A stretch of 64,000 nt of DNA. Origin: Salpingoeca rosetta (Eukaryota; Protista; Choanoflagellata). Numbering within the stretch: the first letter of the stretch is position 1; every line of letters starts with the position of its first letter. The position numbers were made by a program, and so were the translations under genes. A model generated the notes under the pieces. It was not told the DNA's origin and ran no database searches. It was given only the letters and a program-made list of their open reading frames with translations. Location of the stretch: assembly GCA_033442325.1 (NCBI GenBank), contig JAWQFM010000001.1:203376-267375 (forward strand), written 5' to 3'. Shown piece by piece: positions 16,395-18,130 of the stretch.

Positions 16395-17818
16395 TTCACA
16401 CACACACATCCATCCACGGGGGCAGGGGACCAGCCCGGGACGGACGTTGGCCCGATGATCTCGCGAGAGGCGATGCAGCGCGCGTACGACCTGGTTGAGT
16501 CTGGTGTGCAGCAGGGCGCGAAGCTGCTGCTTGATGGCCGCAACATCAAGGTGGACGGCTACCCGGACGGCAACTGGATGGGGCCAACCATCCTGTCGCA
16601 CGTGACAACGGACATGGACTGCTACAAGGAGGAGATCTTTGGGCCCGTGCTGGTGTGCCTTGAGGTTGACACGATTGACGAGGCCATTGAGCTCGTGAAC
16701 AAGAACAGGTGGGGCAACGGGACGGCCGTGTTTACAAACTGCGGCGCCGCTGCCCGCAAGTTCACCTTTGAGATTGAGGCCGGACAGGTGCGTTTGCAGT
16801 TTTTGCGACATGTGTGATGTGTTCTTGTATTGATGAGGTGCGCAAGGTGAGGAGAGAAGAGTGTGTGGTTGTGCGTGTGGTTGTGTGAAGTTGTGGCGGC
16901 CTGTGGTGCAGAAACCGGGTTACTGTCTCCCCCCCCCCACCTTTATCTCTTCCTTCGTCTTGTTTCCTTTGCTTGTGCTGCTTCCTTCCCCTCCTTCCCC
17001 TCCCTTCTCTGCCTCTTGACCCCCATCACCCATTGTGGCGTGGCTGGGTCGCACCTCTTGTGTGCGCCCTGTGCCTTTTGCTTTCACAAGTACGGTGGGG
17101 AACACTATCCTCCACAGTGTGCATACGTGGCTCTTTGTGTTTGCTCGCATGTGGACACACGCGCCACGCACGAGCACAGTCACGGCACATACACACATTT
17201 TCCGTCGTCTTCACTCTTTTCTTTGTTTCCTCTCGTGGTTCTCTCTCTCTCTCTTTTCTTACGCGTTTCTTTTCAGTTCAAGTGACACAAATGCCACGTC
17301 GTACTTATTCTGTCTTGCTCACTCACACTTACGCACACACTCACACACTCACACACGTGTCTGTGTGTTTGCGATCAGGTTGGCGTGAACGTGCCCATCC
17401 CCGTGCCGCTGCCCATGTTCTCCTTCACGGGCAACAAGGCCTCCTTTGTCGGCGACCTCAACTTCTACGGTGCGTGCACGCAATGTAACATTGGCCCTGT
17501 GTTGATGTGTCTGGACACAGTTACACACACACACACACACACACAACACACTACACACACGACACAACACAACACGACACGACACAACACAACACAACAC
17601 ACAAACCCCACCAACCGTTGTGGCGTGGCTGGGCTGCATGTATTGGTTCATGCGTGCCCTGTGCCTCTCGTTTTCCACAAGTACGGTGGGGGAGATGAAG
17701 CATTGATGTTTCAGTGCTGGTGTTTGCGGCTCGATGCGTGGTTGATGCAATCGCAGTGACGATCTCAACCCAGTCGCAGTGCCAACATACATCCACAAAT
17801 TACACACACACACACACA

Positions 17819-17885
<67 letters not shown>

Positions 17886-18130
17886 TCTTTCTTCCCAACA
17901 CACACTGCTGCACCATGCGTGACCAGCATTTCCAACCATCATCCATGCATCCATGCATCCACCCATGCATCCATTCACTCACCCTTGTCTGATGCCATAC
18001 TGTGCTGTGCACGGCGACAGGCAAGGCCGGCGTGCAGTTTTACACGCAGCTGAAGACCATCACGAGCCTGTGGCGCAACAGCGATGCAGATGTGCTCAAG
18101 GCCGCCACCGTCATGCCAACCATGAAGTGA
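13251..18130 (+). CDS. ALDH6A1: Methylmalonate-semialdehyde dehydrogenase (acylating), mitochondrial
   Basis: Exons encode [86 protein letters not shown], catalytic [41 protein letters not shown] and [15 protein letters not shown] at 18128-18130. Confidence 0.95.
17021..17196 (+). ncRNA. Candidate intronic box H/ACA-type RNA, copy 1
   Basis: Hairpin CCCCATC..GGTGGGG, then ANANNA (ACACTA, 17102-17107), a second hairpin GTGTGC..CGTGGCT/AGTCACG..GCACAT, and ACA at 17191-17193. Paralogous to the copy in the next intron. Confidence 0.55.
17606..17790 (+). ncRNA. Candidate intronic box H/ACA-type RNA, copy 2
   Basis: Hairpin CCCCACC..GGTGGGG, then ANANNA (AGATGA, 17693-17698), a second hairpin TGGTG..TGCGGCT/AGTCGCA..TGCCA, and ACA directly after it at 17785-17787. 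Confidence 0.6.

Follow-up and report, generated by a model that had tools for sequence, protein, structure and literature searches.

The 3′ end of a gene encoding a methylmalonate-semialdehyde dehydrogenase of the ALDH6A1 type lies on the + strand, at positions 16422..18130, of the 64,000-nucleotide stretch of Salpingoeca rosetta DNA analyzed here (the window), as indicated by its translation, PF00171 homologs, spliced reads and stranded coverage. Three exons (16422-16787, 17379-17469 and 18021-18130, the last ending in the stop codon) translate into the C-terminus of the enzyme, and stranded RNA reads confirm the strand of the gene. They are separated by the penultimate intron of ALDH6A1, intron A (16788-17378, + strand), whose junction is confirmed by RNA reads, and by its last intron, intron B (17470-18020, + strand). 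These introns of 551-591 nt are mostly made up of the predicted snoRNA and microsatellites. Both intron positions at the 3′ end of ALDH6A1 are kept in relatives (723-906 in contig L139; 1042-1219 and 1312-1395 in contig L147), and the introns of these relatives that lack the snoRNA are far shorter (85-184 nt). Intron A also carries a GT-rich repeat (16858-16895), in which six of ten reads from RNA run X22, and from this run only, show T instead of A at 16888. Loose ends also occur in this run at 16861 and 16895, and some reads carry additional (GT)n letters between 16878 and 16861; these features suggest a length polymorphism between strains or alleles. The stretch GAAGTTGTGGCGGCCTG of intron A (16887-16903) looks like the beginning of the upper stem in hairpin 1 (described below) and has the 9-mer GTTGTGGCG in common with copy 2. 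This likeness is probably due to chance, and the covariance model passes over these positions.

A sequence-only reading of this locus had placed one structured element in each of the two introns of a metabolic host gene, with three sequence blocks common to both. All of this holds: the gene translates as an ALDH6A1-type enzyme, and within the 64-kb window each of the blocks has two occurrences and no more (17033/17618, 17066/17656 and 17085/17676), with one set per intron and offsets of 585-591 nt between the copies. Both copies are on the + strand. On the basis of their homology and common two-hairpin fold, copy 1 in the penultimate intron is predicted to give a mature RNA of 176 nt (17021..17196, + strand), and copy 2 in the last intron, at the position orthologous to that of the single copy of a marine relative, one of 189 nt (17606..17794, + strand). 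Homology between the copies extends from the base of hairpin 1 to about 3 nt past the ACA, and outside the elements introns A and B have only microsatellite-like words in common; similarity limited in this way is the pattern expected from selection on a processed H/ACA RNA. The elements had been described as longer than typical guides, which is true of their length (176-189 nt, and 243 nt in the relative), but they still fall inside the known H/ACA size range.

A search of the 64-kb window with the covariance model R1, which covers hairpin 1 and box H, found no third copy, and inspection of the sequence around the elements revealed no target-site duplication. Scanning JGI metagenome contigs for the upper-hairpin blocks returned 16 matches, all of them chance matches without flanking similarity. 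In run X18, one contig has 17613-17764 fused to foreign sequence. It was considered as a second genomic copy and rejected; its junction, at 17761-17764, is exactly GATC-GATC, as is typical of Hi-C ligation. Runs X18 and X20 are probably Hi-C libraries, as judged from this type of junction, and chimeric contigs of this kind could pass for extra genomic copies.

In both copies, hairpin 1 consists of a 7-bp basal stem (P1, CCCCAYC/GGUGGGG), a 5/4 internal loop, the stem UUGUG/CACAA, small asymmetric loops, the stem GGC/GCC and an apical stem, which differs in sequence between the copies with its pairing kept. In copy 1 the hairpin spans 17021..17100 (+ strand) according to its minimum free energy (MFE) fold, RNAalifold on a MAFFT alignment and covariance model R1; P1 pairs CCCCAUC (17021-27) with GGUGGGG (17094-17100), and the upper stem starts from GUG (17035-37), paired with CAC (17085-87). 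No manual alignment is needed to recover this hairpin, which appears both in the MFE folds of the single sequences and in the combination of MAFFT and RNAalifold (26 pairs, none broken). The hairpin and the hexamer that the sequence-only reading had described at this place are both present; what changes is the base of the hairpin, which is the CCCCAYC/GGUGGGG stem, with box H 1 nt after it. Box H is ACACUA in copy 1 (17102..17107, + strand), a match to ANANNA located 1 nt after P1, and AGAUGA in the same alignment columns of copy 2 (17693..17698, + strand); in the relative, ACACCA is found at the matching place. Across the three sequences, A1, A3 and A6 are invariant and all of the N positions vary.

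The basal loop is the most conserved internal loop of hairpin 1, and it was the comparison across species that pointed to it as the guide pocket. Its two putative guide strands on the + strand are ACCCAUU (17028..17034) and AAGUAC (17088..17093) in copy 1 and AACCGUU (17613..17619) and AAGUAC (17679..17684) in copy 2. The 5′ guide of copy 1 is identical in the metagenomic relative, and its 3′ guide lies inside a 16-nt block that is identical in all three sequences. From the top of the pocket to box H, AAGUAC (6 nt), P1 (7 nt) and a 1-nt spacer add up to 14 nt, and the published requirement for the distance from target to box is about 15 nt (PMC6049503). The pocket approaches this rule only if the UUGUG/CACAA helix opens its two lowest A-U pairs, and in the predicted fold it is partly closed.

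Hairpin 2 spans 17117..17190 (+ strand) in copy 1, with the stems GUGUGC/GCACAU, CGUGGCU (17126-32)/AGUCACG (17178-84) and UGCUCG (17142-47)/CGAGCA (17171-76) and a 9/1 internal loop. In copy 2 it spans 17714..17788 (+ strand), with the stems UGCGGCU (17725-31)/AGUCGCA (17772-78) and GGUUGA (17740-45)/UCAACC (17765-70) and an 8/1 loop. The earlier observation that these stems remain paired in both copies despite the divergence of their sequences is thus confirmed, each copy having a 7-bp and a 6-bp stem in the same geometry; this configuration arises in 1.4-2% of dinucleotide shuffles. The hairpin ends in CAU-ACA-NNN in both copies, and ACAUACA is present in both directly after the stem. Box ACA is placed at 17191..17193 in copy 1 and at 17789..17791 in copy 2 (both + strand), with predicted 3′ ends at 17196 and 17794. 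It follows hairpin 2 directly in the S. rosetta copies and after 1 nt in the relative, and the similarity between the copies stops about 3 nt later; the genome itself is CA-rich.

No pocket with both sides open is present in hairpin 2, the loop of which is 9/1 or 8/1 and is closed by the covarying 7-bp stem. One-sided guide pairing is known to fail (PMC6049503), and with 1 nt on the 3′ side of the loop a substrate cannot be held on both sides. Likewise, no target of hairpin 2 was found in the stand-in rRNA described below, its best matches being no better than those of shuffled guides; the top candidate, stand-in U2446, was rejected since its yeast equivalent, 2211, is not among the published Psi sites. 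Hairpin 2 is probably structural, and a role in RNP assembly fits its rapid change with kept pairing and its large expansion in the relative. The lack of a pocket, a fold kept via many compensatory changes and the 150-nt branched domain of the relative can also be read as signs of a second, non-guide function of hairpin 2, such as RNA or protein binding or host-gene splicing, in a dual-function H/ACA lineage specific to choanoflagellates, which we regard as quite unlikely.

In a structure-guided hand alignment, the two copies have 43 base pairs in common, of which 32 are identical, two show one-sided changes, nine show double changes and none is broken. Since the 3′ half was fitted by hand, the count of covarying pairs in hairpin 2 depends on this alignment; an alignment of the 3′ halves by MAFFT only misplaced the 5′ strand of hairpin 2 on a chance 8-mer and was unusable for covariation. 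RNAalifold on the structure-guided alignment gave the same fold, with an SCI of 0.86 and a z-score of -10.6 against column shuffles, so that the RNAalifold check proposed for the two copies does return a common fold without broken pairs. One detail of the sequence-only reading has to be withdrawn: the five changes seen in the apical stem (CGCAC/GTGCG vs GCATG/CATGC) came from a comparison that was out of register, and column by column the stem has two pairs with double changes and one with a single change. As several stems contain G.U pairs, the fold can form on the + (sense) strand only. The layout hairpin, ANANNA, hairpin, ACA that had been read from the two copies is present in both of them and in a second species.

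This second species was found with the 122-aa exon as query. A fragment 89% identical to it (P0001) occurs on 17 marine-metagenome contigs, including one from a Tara Oceans sample, and six contigs from several marine-metagenome assemblies carry the 89%-identical exon, the same gene end and one element in the last intron (R1 E-value 8.4e-9). In contig L139 the introns are at the same positions as in S. rosetta; the penultimate intron (184 nt) is without the element, and the last intron (998-1540) contains it at 1121-1363 (243 nt). The relative has kept P1, the loop AACCCA/GUAC, the stem UUGUG/CACAA and the 16-nt block CACAAGUACGGUGGGG. In its hairpin 1, AGCU/GGCU takes the place of GGC/GCC, A-U replacing G-C, and pairing is perfect in an apical stem of wholly different sequence. 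Its 3′ domain is a 150-nt branched hairpin that ends in CUUGG-C-ACA-ACU and has no significant sequence similarity to the 3′ domains of the S. rosetta copies. Within this domain (about 1240-1250 of L139), the hairpin GCCCCCCCUUAGGGGGGC, formed by a C-run and a G-run, differs in length between L139 and the contigs L138 and L143, which may reflect an indel within the population or a slip in the assembly. In contig L147, from a more distant relative whose exon fragment matches 75% of the query at 80% identity, the introns are short and sit at the same positions, and the element is absent from these introns and from the other loci with ALDH6A1 fragments (L147-L150). An ortholog in a second species, together with a relative that lacks the element, shows that the RNA is conserved in two species and is not required by the host gene.

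The RNA had also been called probably unannotated, and the Rfam covariance-model search proposed as a check agrees with this, as it returned no relevant family at gathering or relaxed thresholds. No Rfam model matched the window at its gathering score, and none of the H/ACA families, including the snR81, SNORA7 and U17/snR30 models, matched the + strand of the S. rosetta region or the relative at E-values up to 10. In two stranded RNA-seq runs, the libraries of which look poly(A)-type, the exons are covered 45-135x and both introns 0-7x, with flat coverage and no peak on the elements; in one poly(A)-type-looking run, coverage of hairpin 1 of copy 1 is 0-0.3x. Because poly(A)-type libraries would lose non-polyadenylated RNAs, the flat and low coverage of the introns neither supports nor refutes a stable RNA of about 180 nt.

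Targets were searched for in a stand-in for the host rRNA, namely a eukaryotic rDNA repeat that is a contaminant in the MAG of a sponge symbiont (Poribacteria; contigs L090 and L067) and is not the host's own rRNA. Its SSU, 5.8S and LSU (3631 nt) were identified by Rfam, and the two ITS regions measure 299 and 180 nt. It is presumably not human, the human ITS regions and LSU being much longer. In viral contigs, a scan for a eukaryotic 18S motif that could lead to such a stand-in found nothing. More than 120 contigs (L017-L136) of assemblies labeled bacterial or archaeal contain the exact eukaryotic 18S motif, which indicates that contamination with eukaryotic rDNA is widespread in such assemblies. 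The analysis covered L067 and L090; some of the other 118 contigs are possibly human rDNA contamination. In one group of many actinomycete assemblies, the contigs with the motif are identical in length, at 7682 nt.

The pocket of copy 1 and of the relative (ACCCAUU, AAGUAC) forms 7+4 Watson-Crick base pairs with 5′-ACUU-[U]A-AAUGGGU-3′ at U1271 of the stand-in LSU: ACCCAUU pairs along its whole length with AAUGGGU on the 3′ side of the target U, and AAGUAC contributes 4 bp with ACUU on the 5′ side. At the same site, the 5′ guide of copy 2 is weaker (four Watson-Crick pairs and one G.U) and the 3′ guide again gives 4 bp, and the resulting 9 bp, including one G.U, exceed the published minimum of 8 bp for guide pairing (PMC6049503). 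A score of 11 was attained by six shuffled guides and by two random ones, out of 1000 each; on reversed rRNA the real guides scored only 7.5. The raw p of about 0.005 for this complementarity comes from some 27 pocket/sequence combinations tried across the three sequences, and after correction for these pockets the complementarity score alone is only suggestive. Pockets placed higher in hairpin 1, at its upper internal loops, were tried and dropped, their rRNA matches being no better than the shuffled-guide nulls. Yeast numbering was anchored on the stand-in by published modification positions (table in PMC5699541), and equating U1271 with yeast U1052 gave the best fit, placing 9 of 10 Psi sites on U and all eight Nm sites on the right base. 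Psi1052 of yeast 25S is an established modification, which the same table lists as conserved in human (PMC5699541), and snR81 guides it with 9+3 bp (PMC6049503). Taken together, a pocket at the canonical position, guide bases that are kept between species and a target that is a known Psi site render the assignment convincing, though short of proof: as far as can be judged with stand-in rRNA, hairpin 1 would guide modification of the LSU U equivalent to yeast 25S Psi1052. The target sequence predicted in the host 28S is 5′-ACUUUAAAUGGGU-3′.

The H/ACA sno/scaRNA reading proposed for these elements gains support from the layout in two copies and a second species, the box H pattern and the predicted LSU target. 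Hence, we consider it likely that both elements are intron-encoded box H/ACA snoRNA genes, which are transcribed in the ALDH6A1 pre-mRNA and whose predicted RNAs guide LSU pseudouridylation through hairpin 1. An H/ACA-type RNP RNA that does not guide modification of the U1271-type site, being instead an orphan or having a processing or chaperone role like that of snR30/U17 or snR10, seems unlikely to us. The 11-bp match would then be due to chance, and it was indeed found after many pocket definitions, with a pocket in hairpin 1 that is partly closed in the predicted fold, no pocket in hairpin 2 and a degraded guide in copy 2. However, the m1/m2 motifs of snR30/U17 are not seen in the sequence, and the bases that form the guide are the ones conserved between species. 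Moreover, the matched U is a published conserved Psi site (PMC5699541), and box H lies at the canonical distance (14 nt vs about 15 nt; PMC6049503).

The two copies and the ortholog all sit at the same gene end and no RNA accumulation is seen in the available poly(A)-type RNA-seq, as would be the case for a cis-acting intron structure that regulates ALDH6A1 splicing or expression, for example by binding a protein or sensing a ligand, without ever yielding a stable RNA. The sequence-only reading had named a splicing element or ligand sensor as alternatives; we find no support for them and regard such a role as very unlikely, as the more distant relative has the same intron positions with short introns that lack the element, so that the gene does not need it, the penultimate intron of the marine relative is also without it, and no role would be left for boxes H and ACA, for the way they are conserved or for the complementarity to rRNA. 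Hairpin 1, an imperfect hairpin of about 80 nt with a 16-nt 5′-arm block identical in both copies and a variable apical region, could also be viewed as the precursor of a small regulatory RNA (miRNA-like or a Dicer substrate), which would explain arms conserved at their 5′ end next to a variable apical loop. Choanoflagellates are, however, without Drosha and Pasha (PMC6206976), the parts conserved in the relative are the basal loop and stem rather than the supposed mature arms, and the linked box H, second hairpin and ACA would be left unexplained, which makes a precursor of this kind highly improbable. The inverted repeats at the ends of hairpin 1 and the spacing of only two copies 585-591 bp apart recall mobile or repeated DNA, i.e. 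a MITE-like palindrome inserted twice in the ALDH6A1 gene, another alternative raised earlier. Two copies are all that the 64 kb contain, without visible target-site duplication, the metagenome motif scan gave chance matches only, conservation is very uneven and accompanied by compensatory changes, and an orthologous copy occupies the same intron in another species. These findings leave the insertion of a mobile element without support and, in our view, barely credible.

If the two elements are snoRNA genes, their RNAs would be released by splicing, after which binding of dyskerin (Cbf5), Nop10, Nhp2 and Gar1 to the hairpins and boxes H and ACA would shield them from exonucleases and leave an RNA of about 176-189 nt. 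The internal loop of hairpin 1 (5′ ACCCAUU, 3′ AAGUAC) would then act as the guide and pair with LSU 5′-ACUU-[U]A-AAUGGGU-3′, so that the U equivalent to yeast 25S Psi1052 could be converted to pseudouridine, and hairpin 2, being without an open pocket, would most likely serve RNP assembly and 3′-end definition only. As the copy in the last intron is common to S. rosetta and the related marine species, it is probably the ancestral one, and the copy in the penultimate intron would be a lineage-specific duplicate that arose in the S. rosetta lineage. The guide of copy 2 may have weakened since, to 9 bp instead of 11.

The RNA pair is new within a known class and not a new kind of RNA, and the understanding of how snoRNAs work is unchanged. 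In the literature, we found no description of choanoflagellate H/ACA snoRNAs. The elements offer a concrete, predicted pairing of guide and target in the unicellular group nearest to animals, and they suggest that choanoflagellates, too, make the pseudouridine corresponding to yeast 25S Psi1052, with a guide unrelated in sequence to that of yeast. They may also illustrate the duplication of a snoRNA into a neighboring intron followed by decay of one guide, and the three sequences can seed covariance models of holozoan snoRNAs.

Vertebrate intron-encoded H/ACA snoRNAs are about 130 nt long, and like the choanoflagellate elements they are found one per intron on the sense strand and are presumably produced by splicing and exonuclease trimming. 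In contrast, the choanoflagellate elements are longer (176-243 nt), have a metabolic host gene and a second hairpin without a pocket, and match no SNORA covariance model. The guide for the equivalent human 28S site is, we assume, SNORA7. U17 is a classic case of paralogs located in successive introns of a single host gene, and U17/snR30 (E1) is a long H/ACA RNA, as are the S. rosetta copies. U17/snR30 acts in 18S processing and is defined by m1/m2 motifs in the loop of its 3′ hairpin; these motifs are not seen in the S. rosetta copies, and the Rfam U17/snR30 models do not match. Yeast snR81 has the same hairpin-hinge-hairpin-tail layout as the S. rosetta elements and the same predicted rRNA position (25S Psi1052, also numbered Psi1051), which is guided by its 3′ pocket (PMC5699541). 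The pairing is asymmetric in a similar way, with 9+3 bp in snR81 (PMC6049503) and 7+4 bp in S. rosetta copy 1. However, the guide resides in the 3′ hairpin of snR81 and in the 5′ hairpin of the S. rosetta elements, in which no second pocket for U2 snRNA is seen, and neither sequence homology nor an Rfam match links the two. As snR81 has been reported to be genus-specific in fungi (PMC5824354) and the sequences are not detectably homologous, the S. rosetta RNA would be a functional analog of snR81 and not its ortholog.
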